Source: Chrysemys picta bellii (lineage: Eukaryota). Taken from it: a stretch of 64,000 nt of DNA. Positions 54,001 through 64,000 of this stretch are shown here, piece after piece (within the stretch, counting starts at the first letter, position 1; the number at the start of each line of letters is the position of its first letter). The position numbers and the translations under genes are program-made. The notes under the pieces are model-generated. The model had not been told where the DNA came from, searched no databases, and was given only the letters and a program-made list of their open reading frames with translations. The stretch covers positions 6,014,001 through 6,078,000 of the forward strand of contig NC_088814.1 of assembly GCF_011386835.1 (NCBI RefSeq), written 5' to 3'.

Positions 54001-54390
54001 GGAATTAGAGAATATCTTTGTAAGAAGTCTCCCGTCGGGAACTGATCCTGATCCCATTGAATTTAGCAGGAGCAGGATGGAACCCTTCATAAGTTGTTAA
54101 TTGTTTTGTGCGTCGTTATACATTCTTGCAAACTGGCACTGATAAAATAGAATTTTTTGGGAAAAAACAACAACCCTGCATACATAATCTCTGGTTTTTA
54201 TTATTATTTTTTGCAAAACTAATAGGGATCCTTGCCAACTTGCTTAGCCCCTAGGTGCTAAAAATTCGTTAATATGGCTTGAGCTGAAAATAAATAAATA
54301 AATAAACAAACAAACAAACAAACAAACGTACCTATCATTTTCCTCTGATCCAACTGCCCTGAATAAACAAAATCGAGGAGAATAACTGGA

Positions 54391-54460
54391 GTAAATCAGG
54401 TAGTTTTATGTTCTTGTGTTTAAAAATAAAACCCCAACAACATGAAACTACCTAATTCAC
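54391..54460 (-). ncRNA. MIR196A1: miR-196 precursor hairpin (mir-196a-1 position); mature 5p TAGGTAGTTTCATGTTGTTGGG at 54454-54433
   Basis: Exact mature miR-196a sequence with a complementary arm forming a stem-loop, at the canonical location upstream of Hox9. Confidence 0.97.
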
Positions 54461-57293
54461 AAAGCAGTTCTAGTTCATTCCTGGGTCAAAGGCTAAAATT
54501 ACCAAGAAAGGCGCCTGGGCGGCCATTTTGTTTGACATCACTTGCAATCTGAACTTTTATAAAAGAAAACAGTTGCTAGGAAACAAAAGCAACAAAAGGA
54601 TCTTTTCAAAGACAAAAAACCCCTACGATTTCACGAAATATCTATTCAGATTATTTCCTATGTACAGTGTCTAGAACGGATCTCTCCTGCAGGAGTTTAC
54701 AAATAGTTTACAAATAGACTAGAGGAAACAGTAAAATACTATTGACTTTGAGAAACAAACGATTATCTCAGCTATAAATAGAGCACAAAAATTTCTCAAG
54801 CTTTTAATAAAAGCAATTGAAAGCATCTTTTTCCATGTGAAAATGTTTTTTGAATAATCTGATTTTTGTTTAAAAAAACCCAAGTATTTGGATAACTTCC
54901 TTTTGACAATAACATTAAAATAAAACCAGTGAATTCTGGAAATCAAAAAATCATAATTAATTTCTCTCTCACCCCCCCCCCCAAAAAGTAAGTATAACTT
55001 GATCCAAGATTTTCAAAGTTTGAATCGATGGGAACAATAGAAAAAGCACCGCCACATCTATTCTATCGCTATAATTTAGCAACTCTAAGGAACTCGTCCC
55101 TTTTTTGCATTGAATATATAAATGATGTGTTTATATAAAATAATTACCAATTTTATAAAGGGGAAGTATTAAACCTAGCAAGCTGAGGAGAGGGTGAGGA
55201 AAGATGGTTGGATAACAGCCCCAAACGGAGTTTTTGCTGAGGTTCAAGGTTCTGTGAGATTTCCTTAATTCTTAGAAGACTTTTAGAACTTTTCAAGCAC
55301 ATGAAACAATTTAAATTTAGATTCCCTTAAAAATATATAACACTGAGATTTTCTACTTCAGTTTTCCCGCTGCCATCATTTTGAAATGTCATAAAATATA
55401 AATTAAATGTCTTACCTCGTGTGCTGTATACTTTTATAAGTGGATTAAATAAATCAACTCACTCGAAAGGCAATAAAGCAAAGATAGCCGTGTTTCTAAA
55501 GGGCAAGTTTCCTAGCGTTTAAAAGTTCATTAGAAGAAAAACCAAACAAACCAAACGCACCACAACAACGAGTCCGAGTTCAAGAGACGCAGGGAGGAGC
55601 CTGAAACTTGACTATAACTTAGTTTGATTTCATTAGCAAAGCCTTTAAAAGACTGGACGGGATGGTATATAAATCTATTGTACCGGAAATACAATAAAAC
55701 TTAGCCCTGTTGTTGAACTTCAAACAGTTTACATCACATCAGGCGGTGAAGAGAAAGAAAACACAGATTTAAAAGAAAACACCACACCACCACCATCCTA
55801 CCATACATCATAAAAGGAGAAATAACTTAGGATCCGAATATCAAGCATGCTAGGTTTTTATTTTTGTGCAATATTAGACCTCTTTTTGAAAATTACAAGA
55901 CAGAGGAAAAAATATTAGTAGACATCTTTGGCGGCGACTGCGATTTAAAATCAAGATGTATTTTTTTATTTCAAATGCATCATTTCACTTTTGACCACAG
56001 TCATGACTGTGCACCAGAGAAGGGGCAGGTTCAAGTTTAAATCAAACTCTGGGGGGAAAAAAACCAAAAGGCTATATTACTATCAAACTTTATTTGCGTT
56101 TCATTGACAAATAATCCACACCCCACACGTGTCAAAACGTCTTATATTGAATTCTATCTGCTGCACCGACTTTTTAAAATTTGAAACCACGAGGTCAGAC
56201 ATTTTCATTCCCCTTCTTCGAAGCTTCCAGCACTAGAGTGACTTTGGTATTGAGAGCTCATCCACTTATACAAAACAACAAACTGGAAGAATATGTTTAT
56301 AATTGAGCTTTCGCTGCTCAAATTTGGAAATTAAAGACCCCCCCCCATTAAATGACAGACTGAAACATTAATTAGACGACCTAGATACGTGTGAAATACA
56401 AAGCTTCGTGTGCCATATAATTTCAAGGCCAGGTTTAAAATAAATAACGCAGAGTTTAATAATAATAATAATAAAGCGACATAAGCTATATATTGGGTTT
56501 AATCCTTGAGCTGCAATAACATTTTACAGTAATGGGACTCCCCCCTCCCCCCTTTCTGGCTGTTGCGAAAGTTCTTCAAAATGTTTTAAAATTAGGCGTC
56601 ACAGACCAGCTAGTGCTCTTATATAGTTAATGGATATCTTAGCTATAGGACAACTTCCACTCATCAAGAGATACGTGCTAAAATTAATAGGCAAGGGGAA
56701 ATGAAAGTCTATGCGTATATATCAATATATGTATATCTGTGTATGTATCTATTTTATATATATGCTTTTGACTCTTAAGTTCTCATTATGGGTTTCCTTG
56801 TGCTTTATTTAGACCTTCACAACGCTATGTTTTTATTAAAATATTGTTATAACAGCTGTTTGTCAGGGTTCCCATCCATCAGAAATGGCCTCTGGGAGTA
56901 TTTGTCATCAGTTCCGTAAGAGTGGTGAAATATTTTCAACCAGAATGTGTTACATATGGAAGGCGCTTATCGCATTTATATGGATAAGATTAAAAAGTTG
57001 GCTTAAAAAACCCTTACAGTCTAGCGTTGTACGAGCTCCATTCCAAAGAAATGTCAGTGGGGCTATTACTTTAGAGTGAATTCTTTTTAACTCTGTTTGA
57101 GCCTAAAGGATATATCACAAACAAAAAAACCCTACGTCGGAATATTTCTTAACCACGTGGTTTAGAAGATAATAAAATATATATTTGAAACCCCTTAACA
57201 TTGTTACAGCCGCGGTAACAAAGGAAAAAATAAATATTACCCCTCCTTTTCTTCCCCCCAAATTGATTTGCGTTGGTTTTATTTAGTCACTTG

Positions 57294-57571
57294 TCACAAT
57301 GAGAACTGAGCTGTTAAATTCTGGTAGTACCCTATTATCTCTAGTCGTTTTTTTTCAGTTTCATCCTGCGGTTTTGGAACCAGATTTTGATTTGTCTAAT
57401 CTGTGAAGTTGACACTTCGTCTGACCTCTAGGCGGCGCTCTCTGGTTAAATACATAAAGAAGAATTTCTTTCCCAGCTCTAGCGTCTGGTATTTAGTATC
57501 AGGGGTTCTTTTTTTCTTTCCACCCTTTGCAGTCAGCCAGCTGCCAGTTATAGGTTCAGCTTTTGTATCCT
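57294..57571 (-). pseudogene. Hoxb10: HoxB10 relic, exon 2 (degenerate group-10 homeobox with frameshifts)
   Basis: Acceptor acttggcag|AG, then [57 protein letters not shown], a +1 T (creating TAG), then [16 protein letters not shown] and further slips, then [25 protein letters not shown] and RMKLKK are group-10 signatures. It sits in the Hox10 slot just 5' of miR-196. Confidence 0.9.
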
Positions 57572-57612
57572 CTGCCAAGTATAAGACAAACATGTGTAAC
57601 TGTGTTTTGATG

Positions 57613-57614
57613 GA

Positions 57615-57668
<54 letters not shown>
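57613..57668. repeat. (GAAA)14 microsatellite, reading (TTTC)14 on the minus strand just upstream of the relic acceptor
   Basis: Direct reading. Confidence 0.95.
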
Positions 57669-57670
<2 letters not shown>

Positions 57671-60600
57671 ATTGGACAAAATTAGATTAATTTTCTATTC
57701 ATTAAAAAAAAAACAGAAAAAGCAACTAATTTGTCCACTTAAAAATCAAAACTAGTTCTCTGTGGACCAAATTCAGAGGAAGGTTCTTGAATTTAGACTG
57801 CCAGTAACAGTCTGTTAGCTCCTTTTTCACTGAACTCAGGTATCTGTTGTAAATCCAAGATAAACGAAATTGAATTATGCTTTTAAAAAAAGTTTCTGTA
57901 AGGCATGGAATAACCAAGATTTTCCAGTCACAAGCAGTTTTACATGAGATAGCAACCCAGGAATGACATTAAAACCAGAAGCCTTTATATTACACAACTG
58001 CATATTTGTACCTTGTTCTTATTACCAGCGCAACCCACTTTATTATATTATTATTCACTGATGTTCAGACGTACATAAAGTAAGCACATGCATCACATTT
58101 TGCCAGGCTTACAATACAGACTCAAAGACTAACGCCGCAGCATCACAAATGGCGATTAGCAAATGAATACAAGGTGCGCAGGGAAATAACCATGATCAGA
58201 GATAATGACGCGACACAGCCTTCATCTCCGAAATTTAGAAGAGAAAGCGATTGGCTGGAAATGTCCACAGGCTATGTAAGACTCCAAGGACCAGTGAAAA
58301 TCATATCCAGTATAAAATGTCATATCCCACCTTTAGGTGAGCATGTACCAGAATAAAAGCGTGGTGGAAAAAAATTAAGGGGGAAAAAGATACAATATCA
58401 TCATATGAAAGAGACACCATCAATTTGTAATTTATGGTCAAATTTTTTTTTAAGCTAACGGTAGCTTCAGGTATTAGACCTACTCCTGAATCCCCCTGCC
58501 AAATTTTTTGTGGTTTTACAATTACATGTTAACAATTTATTATTTAGTATTATTATTAACAATAATAATATTTGACCTCCTGTGGTGGGAAAGTTTCCCA
58601 CAAAGCAAAGGAGAAATTGACTATGAAAAGTGAACCTGACTAGACACAAGTTGGTGCTGTCAAATGCGCCCAGTTAAAAAACAATTCTCAGTCTAATCTC
58701 TTTCAGTCATTTTAGGAGATAGGTGCAACAATAGAAAGTCAACATGAAAAAAGAGTGATTTAAAAAACAAAATCGACGGTGTCCATTTAAGTGAGTCAAA
58801 GAACTCAATAGGAAGCCATTCGACACGCCATTTTGGTCCGTCCAGCATACACCTGAACATATTGAAAAACAGCTGTCAGTAAATATGTTTCCAGGGACTA
58901 AAATCATTTCTAGACTGAGTCATTTTCTGGATAGAAAATCCTAGTATCCGACCCATACTTTATATGTCACGATAGCATGATCACGTCCCCCCAGTATCTA
59001 AAGAATTAAGCAAATCGAAATGTAGGAGCAAATTCTGCTCTCCGTGATATAGAGCCTTGTACTTAAGAGCAGAATCAGGTCTCCCAACTGCGGAGGGGAA
59101 TTTTTCAGACACTAAGAAATATATAAAAAAACCTATGGACGTGGTTCCATTACAGTTAAAAGTTTTCTCAAAATACATCTCTTACTGTCTGCAGACGCTA
59201 AATATAAGTGAACGCTTTGTAAGGAAGATAAAAAACAAACGTGTTCCTCTGTAGCAAGGCACAAACACTAAACTTCAGGTTTTGTTTGCTGCTTTCTTTT
59301 TAATGTATTAGAGGTCAATAGCCTTGCTTCTGTGGCTAATATGGACATATTTAAACACAATAATTGAGTTTTAAATACAGTTGGGGTTAAATTGATTATC
59401 ATATGAACTCCAATCCTTAAATTCAGCACCTAACTTTAGTCACATGAACAATCCCTTAGACAACTCACGTGAGTAAAGTCTTTCATGTGCTTGGCAGGAT
59501 CGAGCTCTCAGTGTGGAAAAAAAAAACAACCAAACTTTATTTTTAAATCTTTATTGGTCTCTGCAGATGCTGCAAAGTTACTGACTCAGTCAATTGAAAT
59601 GTTCTTTAATTAGTAGTAGAGTATTTTGGCAGAGTGGCTAAGCCTTAAAAAGTAATTTAGCAGCAGGTACAGCATAATATAGGAAACATTAGGTTGATTG
59701 CCATTAAATAATGGAAATTACCAAAATGTTTTAAACAAACTTATTTTATGATCCAATGAGCAGTCAATCTGTATATGCACATTTAACTTTACCAAATTAA
59801 ACTTTTAGTCTAGTTGCTTCACATATAGCCTCAAGGGATCATAGTGTAGACCTTTTTTTTCCAGGCATTCACCTACCCCCCCCCAAAAAATCGAAAGATC
59901 ACAGCATTACCTATTTTCAGGGTTGGGTTTTTTGCTTCTATTACTTTCATCCAGTTACATTGATTCCAGGGATATTTTTTAAAGAGGTTTAAATCTTTCT
60001 AATAATTCCCCGTTGTCAAGAATTAGAAATGCTGACTGGCAAAGGCAGTCAAGGAAACATACAAAACTATGCTCTTATTTCAATAAAACATTCAAATTGC
60101 CCATATCAGGTTAGTTTCAGAGGGGAATACAGTTAAAAATTCATAGATTAATGTGTTTAAATAAGCCGGTTGCACTAATAGGTCTTTTTCACGGTTTTCA
60201 ACACTTAGTAGAAAACTATAAAAAGTAGGGAACTGCCAGGAAATTGAATTTAAAGTTACAATAATTATGAAGCAAATGTATATCGATCTATCTAAGCTTT
60301 ATGGAGAAGCGGCACTATAGACGTGGAGAGGAACATAAACCGGACTAGTTCTCCCGAAGTAAGTGGACTTGGCAGTCCTGTTGAAATGACCGCATAGTTT
60401 CAAGTCTAAACTAAGAGACAGCCCTTCTTGTCCACTAAAATGATAGCAATTAAATAACCAATATAAACAGCGTCGTTAAAAATATATCAGGAAGCAAAGA
60501 TATTAGGATGGCTTTGTGAAAATAAAAAAGGTAACTTAGTTAAAGCTAGGTACCTCGTTAAAAGTGCAACCTCACAATTTCTTATTTGGTATTTTTATTC

Positions 60601-61500
60601 TGAAGATCCTGGTTGCAGTTTAAGAAATCCCCACCCTCACATACACCCCGCCGTAGAAAAGTGGCATTTAAATAGTTGGGACGAGTCCACATTTTTGCAT
60701 AGCCTTGATTATTTCATTTTAATTCGATGTCTAGGGTCGAAAGAGATAGTTGTGTTTTTTTTAAAGCCATGCTTGATTATGGACTGGAACGATAACCTCC
60801 CTCTCCCCAAATACAGACATGCTAAGGGAGACAAACATGGGGTGGGGATTTTGCCTCAGATCCTGACATTGGGGGGAAAGGAAGGCAAGGCTGTCTTTAG
60901 GTAAATATTTCAGAGGATTGGAATGAAATGCTAATTAAAAAAACCAGGTCTAACTGGCAGTGCACGTGGCTTAACTGCCTTGGAGTTTCCTACACAGGTG
61001 TCTGAAAGTCTGATGAAAAGAATGCAACATTTTTTGGACTCTACACATGGGAAATGACCAGCGCTCAGCAGGTTTTGAAAGAAACCCTCCAAATTAGTTC
61101 TCCGGTCGCCTACCCACCTTTATTCCAAACTGACTTACCTGTCTGTCTATGACTTTGGACCTCTTAGCTAGAAGAATATCTAAAAAGAATGTTTTTTTCG
61201 TTCAGGGTACCTCTTAGCCATCGCGAAAAAAATTAATCTTTCCAAGCTCTGGGTTATTTTATTTTTAAATCTTTCCTATGGGCCCACTCAGGAATGAGGG
61301 CTGTAATTGAGTCTGGCATGCATGCTTGGGTGCTGTAAATTAATTTTTAACTAAAGGGTCATTGTGTTAGTGAGGGGGGGGCGCCCCCCTTCCCCCACCC
61401 CACCCCCAGCTCCTTGGCAGTCTGGCTAAAAATCACCTTGTTTTGACTGCAAACCTGCTTTTTACCTATACAGTTGCTTTTCTTTTCTTTCCGTACCCAC

Positions 61501-62325
61501 CTTGTATTTCTTGCGACGTTTGGTTGTCTGTAGGCCTGTCTAACAGTGGAGCCTCCTGGAGAAAAAAACGCTGCTCTTCCGTTTTATCCTTCCCAGATGA
61601 CCCAGAGCCGGGTTTCAGTTTAATGGACGCTTCATAATCCCCCTTGACAGTGTCCGAGCAAGATGACGCAGGGCTACTTTCTCGCCGATGTCCATGAGCA
61701 GCAGGGGGGGTGAAATCAGTAGGCAACGAAAGCACCTGGGAACCTGCCGGCTTGATGCCTACCTGAGGCTGTGACGAGCTGTCGATGCTTTGACAAGGTC
61801 CAGTCCCGGGGCTGGTGGTGGACTCAAGCCTGGAGAAGGAGGACCCCTCTGGCTGGGGGGCTGGATAGTTCTTAGCATCAAATCCCAAACTGGACGCCTC
61901 GTCTTTGCCTCTGGGTGCGCACCCACAGGGATCTCTGTGCTGGGGACCACCGTGCCCTGCCGGGTCCCCCCAACCTGGGTGGAAGGGAGGAGGAAGGTAC
62001 CGCAGCAGTCCTGGCTGGTGGCGACTCATCTCACTCCCAAAGGAGGTAAGGGAAATGTTTCCCCCCAGTTTGCAATGGGAAGAAGGGGAGGGTGGAAGGG
62101 GGGGGGAAGATGGGGGCCGAGAAGCAGCTGTCACTGATTGCTTTGGGGACTAGCACTGAGGGGAGGGTAGCCTGCACCAGGAGCTGCACCGGGAGCTGTG
62201 GGGCTGAGGCTGTGACAAAATATACTTTTGGGGGAAGGGGAAAAGGGTCTCTGGCAGTTGACTTATCTGTTAGAAAAGGCGTCTGCGAGCAACTTCCGGT
62301 GAGCGAACCAATCCGAGGTGGACAT
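61501..62325 (-). pseudogene. Hoxb10: Candidate HoxB10 relic, exon 1
   Basis: GC-rich island. ATG at 62325 gives MSTSDWFAHRKLLADAFSNR*, with the same spacing as the group-10 N-terminus MSCSxSPAANSFLVDSLIS. A 211-codon open stretch (62134-61502) ends at donor CAA G|GTGGGT, phase 1, matching the acceptor at 57571. Confidence 0.6.
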
Positions 62326-64000
62326 GACCGCTAGGGCCATCCCCATGGTGTCAATTTTAATGGGAAACTTTACTGGGTTTTTTTCAGAGGACTGGGGTGT
62401 TTCCCCTCCCCAAAAGCAAACATCTGTAGCTAAAGTTGAGCTTTTCCTTGTCTCTCCCGCCAAACCCGTGACTCCAATACAATTATTATTAACCTCCCCA
62501 ATAATATTATGGGATGTTAGTGAGGGTTTTTTAGGAAAGGCTTACGGCGTGAAATCTTTGATGGGCAAGGGAGAAGGGATCTGAGCCGTGAAGAGGGCGG
62601 GAATGTATATCTGATCATGGACGGCAGACCTCTTCCCTATACACAGAACTAAATCTTAACAAGAAGTTGATTTCACAATTACACGTTTTTAACCCTGCCT
62701 TTGGAAGTTTAGGGTTAAAGGAACTGAATGGAGAAGGTAACCTAACCAATCCATTAGCTTTATGCACACATACAAAGAGAGAAATATACATACACCTATG
62801 GTATAGCTATTAAAATATATGTACAACTGGAACATACATTAAATATATACTCATCTGGCACATACAAACGGTACCTAGCACGTTAAAGACAAGATGACCT
62901 GGCCTCCTACTCTGAATTTGTCTTCTATTTTGTTCAATTTTCATACTGATGGGGACTATATACATGAACCAATAAGTAAATAATTGTATTTTAAAAACTA
63001 ATTCCCCTTCGGAAAGTTTTTCACTGTAGAAAAGGCGGGGTGACTCGTCCGGCATTCCATGATGTTGCCTTTTTCTGGATCACCTCGCTGGTTTTTCCAC
63101 CGTTGTTAGTCACGAGCAGCTGGAATTGAGCATGTCAGCAAAAAAAAAAAAAAAAACTAATACTTTTGGGGCAGGCCATTATGTATTTACGATCTCTGGA
63201 CTGTGAAATGAAACAAGTGTTAAATTCCAGTATAAATATTTGTGGTGACAGTACGTAGATTTTAGTCCCTAATAGACTCACACAGAGAAATGGTCTCATT
63301 TGGTATGTACATATTTGTTCCCATTGGTTTTTGCAATAGGCTAACTTTCTTGATTAACTTCCCCCCACAGAAATTCAAGGTCTTGGCCGATTGTCCAAGA
63401 CATAGCGGAATAAGAACATTGTCTTCATAAGAAAAGTTCAATGCTCTAGCAACGGCAAACGCTGCGGGCCTGATTCTGACCTCCGATGTGTGTAAATCAC
63501 CAATAACCCCGATGAAATAGATGGAGTAATGGAGGTGTAAACCCACTAACACTGGATCAGAACCAGCCCCTGTGAGAAACGCATTTATTGCATAAACTGT
63601 TTTAGATTGCACCTTTCCTTAAAAAAAATAGAAAATCTTCCTTTGGAAGAACAAAGAAGCCAAGTTCTGCACTTCCCACCTCAGTATGTATTATACATGT
63701 ACATTTTTTTGGAATGAATTATATGTAGGTTTCGACGAGGGGCCGCACAGGACATTTTTAAAAAACATTCGGCCTGAATCCTAACTCTGCTATTGAGAAA
63801 AAAAAAATGATGTTATCTGTGACAAAATCCTCCCCCTGCTCTCATTGAAAAACCTTTAGGTTTTCAGGTGGTTGAATGGCCACTTTCCAAACGCAGCAGT
63901 TTGGATCAGAGAGTTATAAACTACAGGATGGAGGCAATCTTTGGAAACTGCGTATCCAATTTCGTCTTGAAATACAGCCGCTCTCTAAGGAATGAGCTGG

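Follow-up and report, generated by a model that had tools for sequence, protein, structure and literature searches.

A working HoxB10 gene occupies the group-10 slot of the HoxB cluster in lungfish, coelacanth, ray-finned fishes and sharks. In the lungfish (Protopterus, P0291) and the coelacanth (Latimeria, P0188), this functional gene is located 5' of Hoxb9 and mir-196 and is made up of two exons that are separated by a phase-1 intron. HoxB10 has been reported to be lost in tetrapods or amniotes (PMC7875771, PMC3038165, bioRxiv 10.1101/2024.07.20.604409), and a preliminary description of the present locus was in line with these sources in considering the gene lost in tetrapods. The tetrapod ancestor is likewise given without HoxB10 by Liang et al. 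and Pascual-Anaya et al. (PMC3038165, PMC3707753), and a 2024 preprint describes Hoxb10-12 as absent 'as in all amniotes' (bioRxiv 10.1101/2024.07.20.604409). The papers that could be searched contain no description of such a relic in a tetrapod. Among the best 120 protein matches to coelacanth HoxB10, every HoxB10 comes from a fish, tetrapods are present only through HoxD10 and HoxA10, and no intact tetrapod HoxB10 protein was found; the earlier suggestion that an intact copy may survive in relatives was therefore not borne out by these matches.

Related cases of decay are known from several systems. The Hox pseudogenes of teleosts and other fishes (PMC7057633, PMC4166920) resemble the relic described here in that they decayed in place within the cluster and are recognized by a broken homeobox. 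However, the fish pseudogenes followed recent genome duplications and have a second copy remaining, whereas the turtle relic represents a tetrapod's only HoxB10 copy. The ENAM, AMBN and AMEL pseudogenes of the painted turtle (PMC3562159, PMC4054807) are, like the relic, unitary and in their original synteny, and have been kept for more than 145 My in a slow-evolving genome. The loss of these enamel genes is fossil-dated and expected, whereas HoxB10 had been considered gone some 150 My before turtles existed. In the mouse, the transcribed non-coding units Gm53 and Mir196a-1 are found, like the relic locus, between Hoxb9/mir-196 and the long spacer that precedes Hoxb13.

The relic lies in a stretch of turtle DNA of 64,000 nucleotides (the window), and positions beyond its upper end are given here as window-equivalent numbers. 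Taken as a whole, the locus is very probably best explained as a unitary (unprocessed) HoxB10 pseudogene in a turtle genome, which is still transcribed and whose loss of constraint would date from around 90-210 My ago. The two exons constitute physical evidence of HoxB10 within a tetrapod genome, and they make the date of its loss measurable. The surrounding cluster contains the following features.

About 12.2, 16.6, 27.9, 33.8 and 43.3 kb, minus strand: Hoxb5, Hoxb6, Hoxb7, Hoxb8 and Hoxb9, respectively (homeoboxes and tails).
43230..47043, minus strand: Hoxb9, intact, the 3' neighbor of the relic, with exon 1 at 46525-47043 and the homeobox near 43298.
54388..54463, minus strand: mir-196 precursor, the landmark between group 9 and group 10 (RF00256, 78.2 bits, E 9e-17).
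Window-equivalent 112071-114296, minus strand: Hoxb13, with the homeobox at 112071-112307 and exon 1 at 113943-114296.

The relic is thus placed between Hoxb9/mir-196 on its 3' side and Hoxb13 on its 5' side, with a strand that is common to all. The spacer between the relic and Hoxb13, about 50 kb in length, was searched over window-equivalent 64001-119000 (contig positions 6078001-6133000) and holds no other homeobox; no recognizable trace of a HoxB11 or HoxB12 homeobox is present in the 50 kb up to Hoxb13. HoxB11 and HoxB12 are not known from any jawed-vertebrate HoxB cluster. A scan for the CTCF consensus gave no site near the relic, and relic exon 1 cannot be told from intact Hox first exons by its ratio of observed to expected CpG. 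The window contains three runs of N (1181-1320, 7720-7979 and 19811-19994), which amount to 584 bases.

The nature of the host can be read from the first exon of Hoxb9. This exon shares 90-92% identity with the better-preserved bird sequences, with Neoaves, Phasianinae, Rhea and dove all alike, around 80% with lizards and a caecilian, 76% with the coelacanth, around 72% with mammals and 65-69% with frogs. On this identity pattern the host is a tetrapod, which upholds the earlier wording of an apparently tetrapod HoxB cluster, and the cluster is, as judged from sequence comparison, that of a non-avian archelosaur, a relative of birds and hence an amniote. Blocks of non-coding DNA are also kept between the turtle and Rhea (L022) or Columbina (L032), at 54374-54800, 55452-55758, 56285-56813 and 47845-48074. 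Their identity amounts to 89-92% around mir-196, 79-81% at 55.5-55.7 kb, 85-87% upstream of Hoxb9 and 67-82% at 56.3-56.8 kb, close to the 3' side of the relic. The bird Hoxb9 loci used for this comparison reach window-equivalent 56526 (Rhea) and 56813 (Columbina), which leaves 770 and 480 bp, respectively, between their ends and the relic; a walk along Logan contigs extended to 7 kb upstream of Hoxb9.

The features of the homeobox exon are as follows.

57286..57571, minus strand: HoxB10 relic exon 2, the homeobox exon (lungfish HoxB10 matches at 72% over 58 aa plus 15/16, E 1.7e-24, tblastn).
57399-57571, 57350-57397 and 57286-57348, minus strand: the three successive frames of relic exon 2, followed by TAA at 57283-57285.
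57572..57573, minus strand: ancestral splice acceptor AG, intact, with a pyrimidine-rich tract ahead of it, in phase 1 and matching the frame of the exon 1 donor.
57398..57399, minus strand: an extra T (TT in place of the expected single T), a +1 frameshift that leads to TAG before helix 3.
57348..57355, minus strand: a run of eight A with the second +1 frameshift.
57603..57677: a (CTTT)n microsatellite in the old intron, immediately upstream of the acceptor, at which the contigs of all runs break.

The first piece of the exon (57399-57571) encodes the (N/S)WLTAK motif and helices 1 and 2 of a group-10 homeodomain. Helix 3 is found in the next frame (57350-57397), one base past the extra T, and the C-terminal tail, which reads TTRDNRVLPEFNSS.., continues in a third frame after the slip in the A run, up to the TAA at 57283-57285. 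In the alignment, the relic has both the tail motif KK.xRExR and the upstream (N/S)WLTAK by which group-10 homeoboxes are recognized. A phmmer search with the first piece against 1.84 billion representative proteins returned 266 matches at E<=1e-3, the best of which, a few multi-homeobox fusion gene models aside, are Hox10 proteins (E ~1e-15), with Hox9 proteins next at ~1e-9. The same piece, with its damaged helices 1 and 2, matches no Pfam family at E<=0.01, including Homeodomain PF00046; helix 3, of 16 aa, sits in another frame. The preliminary description of a minus-strand exon with an intact AG acceptor and a group-10 homeodomain is thus borne out by the sequence, phmmer and tblastn.

The damage that had been listed there was also found in every instance, namely the replacements Y8D, E17G, E19K and L40F, the deleted codon N23, the extra T with its TAG and the slip in the run of eight A. 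Further replacements are R2K, L21F, I34V, S35R and V45I, at sites that are invariant across 44 Hox10 sequences. In total, the relic homeodomain has nine replacements of invariant residues, two +1 frameshifts and one deleted codon, lesions by which the turtle copy differs from the functional HoxB10 of lungfish and coelacanth. The homeobox exon is no longer able to encode a homeodomain. The neighboring genes Hoxb5 to Hoxb9 have intact homeoboxes and open first exons, and so are free of such lesions, as had been noted before.

The second part of the relic is a first exon, which lies upstream across an intron of 3.9 kb.

61501..62029, minus strand: HoxB10 relic exon 1, from an ATG shared with the gene models of coelacanth and lungfish down to the donor G|GT; 176 codons without a stop or an uncompensated frameshift.
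62030..62230, minus strand: 5' part of exon 1, with coverage from an RNA-like run; its frame stays open as far as 62134, and weak similarity to the N-terminal region of the fish proteins persists (..GSEM..).

In a translated search with named HoxB10 proteins, the region 61501-62029 is matched in a single frame by coelacanth (E 7e-10), bowfin (2.5e-9), lungfish (2e-9), sturgeon (7e-8) and bichir (1e-7). Altogether, seven bony-fish HoxB10 proteins match relic exon 1 with 30-46 bits (E 7e-10 to 1e-4), whereas 21 of 22 HoxA10, HoxC10 and HoxD10 proteins score no higher than 23 bits, the remaining one being reedfish A10b with 29.6. The match is collinear from the conserved Met to the donor at 61501/61500, and the motifs GKDEAS, KPxP..SF.RL and F.QE are held in common with the collinear first exons of lungfish and coelacanth HoxB10. 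The exon 1 donor and the old exon 2 acceptor are both in phase 1 and join the two exons in one frame, with an intron phase that is shared with the lungfish and coelacanth genes. Exon 2 in turn contains residues of HoxB10 type, including AKGG, S or T in place of Cys6, TKYQ as in lungfish, ISR and VN, and its C-terminus, TRDNRV, corresponds to the TR(D/E)NR(V/I) of coelacanth and lungfish. In a maximum likelihood tree of exon 2, the relic falls inside a B10 group (92/99), with the limits set by the AU tests given below. It is the combination of synteny on both sides, the first exon as the decisive part, the intron phase and the B10 residues that makes HoxB10 orthology secure, and the earlier claim of a HoxB10 fossil in the group-10 slot is sustained by the two-sided synteny, the intron phase and a first exon that is specific for HoxB10.

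Upstream of the conserved Met the outline of the exon fades. An ATG at 62325 was considered as the start codon and discarded, as it is out of frame with the conserved part and its own frame meets a stop. The motif MSCSE..SLI, present at the N-terminus in fishes, has no clear remnant upstream of relic exon 1. A weak match of FSSF..AG..T.NC to the N-terminal motif of bichir and sturgeon HoxB10 is found on the minus strand at 62675-62734 (E 0.02 in a 1-kb target), around 650 nt upstream of the conserved Met, and may represent either a vestige of the lost N-terminus or chance. In the protein collection, a 65-aa open reading frame of the relic has only two matches, both of which resemble teleost HoxC10, with no relic reading frames from other species among them, and an exact look-up of the relic reading frames gave no match.

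Two readings would deny that the locus is a dead HoxB10 gene. According to the first, the gene is intact and its lesions are errors of sequencing or assembly, such as homopolymer slips; both frameshifts are indeed located in short runs (TT and A8), which are error-prone places. However, contigs from runs X13, X8 and X18, which belong to three studies with three organism labels (B, C and D), cover 56800-57602. Among the differences listed between them and the window, a list short of 14 indel and 27 substitution rows, there is no indel difference at the three lesion sites. Since the lesions are identical in these independent data, assembly error is ruled out as their source, which reinforces the earlier view that it could hardly explain all of them. 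Read errors also do not account for nine changed invariant residues and the loss of a whole codon, and we regard this reading as having next to no chance of being correct. Organism C (run X8) has, moreover, a 2-nt insertion at 57347/57348, immediately adjacent to the relic's run of A, as expected of a frame that is no longer constrained. A separate 2-nt deletion in the same organism, at 62097 and upstream of the exon 1 ATG, is a sign of ongoing indel turnover between close relatives. The other reading holds that the exon came from HoxA10, HoxC10 or HoxD10, reached the HoxB cluster by transposition or gene conversion, and decayed there. The N-terminal flank IKAENTTGNWLTAK resembles the turtle's own HoxC10, which is also the top DNA match with 75% identity, and AU tests on the 90-column alignment of exon 2 (B10 p 0.53, A10 0.34, D10 0.40, C10 0.077) do not reject A10 or D10, so that the homeobox comparison proposed in the preliminary description places the relic with B10 in the tree but leaves these two paralogs standing in the tests. 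Against such a copy, the DNA identity of exon 2 is equally low, at 71-75%, whether it is compared with the turtle's own HoxA10, HoxC10 and HoxD10 or with the HoxB10 of bowfin and elephant shark, and it does not extend beyond the exon, which rules out a recent copy. The collinear first exon 3.9 kb upstream fits HoxB10 well and HoxA10, HoxC10 and HoxD10 barely; the intron phase, the strand and the slot between mir-196 and Hoxb13 are all HoxB10-like; and the flank matches shark HoxB10 as well (TKAEN.. NWL). A transposed copy is therefore highly improbable. The turtle's own HoxA10, HoxC10 and HoxD10 are located on other contigs, and a search of the genome gave no further group-10 gene besides the relic. 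With its intron and splice sites kept, no intact copy elsewhere in the genome and its lesions present in independent data, the locus has the marks of an unprocessed pseudogene.

The pseudogene also appears to be transcribed. In run X18 (organism D), the depth is around 8-11 over 61456-62231 and over 56800-58933, near zero and patchy in between, and zero above 62232. One X18 contig joins 61501 directly to 58852, with a GT..AG intron on the minus strand (CT..AC on the plus strand) in which 2648 nt are skipped and the cut is at +3, whereas the genomic contigs of X1 and X8 are continuous over most or all of 58853-61500. The corresponding features are listed below.

58853..61500, minus strand: intron removed in the RNA-like X18 contig, with GT at 61500-61499 and AG at 58854-58853.
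56486..58852, minus strand: long downstream exon of the spliced transcript, which begins at a new acceptor and is unspliced through the dead homeobox exon (X18 contigs 17-19); its lower end, calculated from the length of X18 contig 17, is at least at about 56486.

The donor used in X18 is the exact ancestral HoxB10 donor, whereas the acceptor is new and lies 1.3 kb upstream of the old one, so that, in the one spliced contig seen and in contrast to lungfish and coelacanth HoxB10, the old acceptor of the homeobox exon is bypassed. In at least eight small RNA-like runs, drawn from four studies, 54-84% of the words of 56800-58200 are present, and for 54300-56000, towards mir-196, the share is 30-55% in some RNA-like runs, including those of related organisms. 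These data, in which the RNA status of the runs is given by a tool's guess and the reading of the splice, and the strand by GT..AG only, suggest that the locus is still transcribed and spliced from the old exon 1 donor through the dead homeobox. In the spliced X18 form, an open frame joins the 176 codons of exon 1 to 47 codons of the new exon (61501-62029 with 58712-58852), from which a 223-aa protein without a homeodomain might be predicted.

The date of inactivation can be approached from the extent of decay. The replacement of nine out of 54 invariant homeodomain residues corresponds to ~0.08 neutral substitutions per site (95% interval 0.04-0.15), and the addition of zero nonsense substitutions in 268 codons lowers this d to 0.06 (0.03-0.12), so that the decay of the relic can be put at 0.06-0.08 substitutions per site with an overall 95% interval of 0.03-0.15. 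With the crocodilian and turtle rates cited below, this suggests inactivation around 90-210 My ago, later than the origin of tetrapods, on a basis of about 10 events, borrowed rates and assumed neutrality. There are two rough cross-checks. The relic has two frameshifts in 807 nt, or 2.5 per kb, and exon 9 of painted-turtle ENAM, which died with the Jurassic loss of teeth, has about 10 in 3840 nt, or ~2.6 per kb (PMC3562159). The other is provided by HoxB11 and HoxB12, which have vanished. On the strength of the decay estimate and these cross-checks, a late inactivation is likely, and we infer that HoxB10 was functional in the turtle lineage well after the origin of tetrapods and that other tetrapod lineages lost the gene separately.

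This account competes with the published and most parsimonious view (PMC7875771, PMC3038165), in which HoxB10 died only once, at or before the origin of tetrapods some 350 My ago or more, and has stayed readable through slow mutation in turtles or through non-coding constraint within the cluster. Turtles evolve at around one third of the human rate (PMC4054807), the painted-turtle enamel pseudogenes remain recognizable at an age of more than 145 My, and the upper 95% bound of d, 0.15, translates into 350-395 My at the crocodilian rate of 3.9e-10 per site per year (PMC4299795). Hox intergenic DNA is widely constrained, so slowed decay could make the relic look young; turtle-bird blocks with 69-92% identity, at 54.4-56.8 kb, are found 500 bp to 3 kb away from it, and the relic itself is inside a transcript. 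On the other side, the point estimate of decay is only about half of what 350 My would need, even at the slowest published amniote rate. A 350-My-old death has, at the crocodilian rate, a relative likelihood of 0.23 with the homeodomain data alone and of 0.03 with the combined data, in which the lack of nonsense substitutions is included, and turtles are probably somewhat faster than crocodilians (PMC9299637). Moreover, between close relatives the relic stretch diverges to the same extent as its flanks (0.5% and 1.1-1.4%) and has acquired a new indel, so that no special constraint is visible on it, and HoxB11 and HoxB12 left no trace at all. A single ancient loss is on balance unlikely. The earlier proposal of late and parallel losses in place of one ancestral loss is plausible on a decay that fits ~90-210 My, although a date of 350 My retains the relative likelihood of 0.03-0.23.

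A separate matter is whether the remains of the gene have been put to a new use. Following the loss of HoxB10 function, the homeobox exon would have decayed in place, with the two-exon structure, its phase-1 intron and both splice sites retained, and the HoxB10 promoter and first exon may persist as the head of a non-coding transcript. Any present role of the locus would be that of a non-coding transcription unit, placed upstream of mir-196a-1 and Hoxb9 at the position of mouse Gm53. In its stronger form, this proposal holds that the promoter and exon 1 were kept as the head of a functional spliced RNA, be it the primary transcript of mir-196a-1, a Gm53-like lncRNA that acts on Hoxb9 and Hoxb13, or the message for a short protein without a homeodomain. 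Splicing leads from the ancestral donor to a new acceptor, after which the transcript reads on in the direction of mir-196, and part of 54300-56000 is present in RNA-like runs of several related organisms. In the mouse, Gm53 and Mir196a-1 are located within 19 kb 5' of Hoxb9 (bioRxiv 10.1101/2024.07.20.604409; PMC8920890), and the knock-down of Gm53 alters the levels of Hoxb9 and Hoxb13 (PMC8920890). Exon 1 also has no stop or uncompensated frameshift in its 176 codons, as against three indels in the 286 nt of exon 2; given the decay estimate, the chance of finding no stop is ~0.19 and that of finding no frameshift, roughly estimated, ~0.07, and the intactness of exon 1 exceeds the prediction from exon 2 at a chance of about 2%, again roughly estimated. 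However, the six differences in exon 1 between organism D and the window comprise four non-synonymous and two synonymous changes, as is expected without coding constraint. The spliced contig can be followed to at least ~56486, short of mir-196 at 54388-54463, and transcription of a pseudogene inside an active Hox domain may be a mere by-product. Such a takeover is rather unlikely.

The fullest version of the late-loss account can be offered tentatively, as possible rather than probable. It would have HoxB10 working in amniotes and in the turtle stem until ~100-250 My ago, with independent losses in amphibians, mammals, lepidosaurs, archosaurs and turtles, and with the promoter and exon 1 living on as the 5' end of a spliced ncRNA upstream of mir-196a-1 and Hoxb9, the reptile counterpart of mouse Gm53. 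That Gm53 itself might have descended from HoxB10 is only an idea, although the relic does provide a candidate origin for a poorly understood transcription unit beside mir-196a-1. If a late death is true, the ancestral amniote had one posterior Hox gene more than has been assumed, and the 'empty' spacer between Hoxb9 and Hoxb13 was emptied repeatedly, which bears on why the spacer exists.

Finally, some observations concern the names and models of neighboring or related genes. The longer Hoxb9 isoforms of lizards and pheasants (P0009, P0018, P0039 and P0003) have exon 1 and the homeobox exon separated by ~25-35 additional residues, which implies a further coding exon within the intron of Hoxb9. 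The African lungfish protein P0291 is named 'Hox-A10-like' but aligns as HoxB10 and is probably encoded on the same contig as lungfish Hox-B9 (P0049), with which it has the length of the longest contig in common, so that its public name looks wrong. Several HoxB10 proteins of sharks and rays likewise carry the name 'A10-like'.
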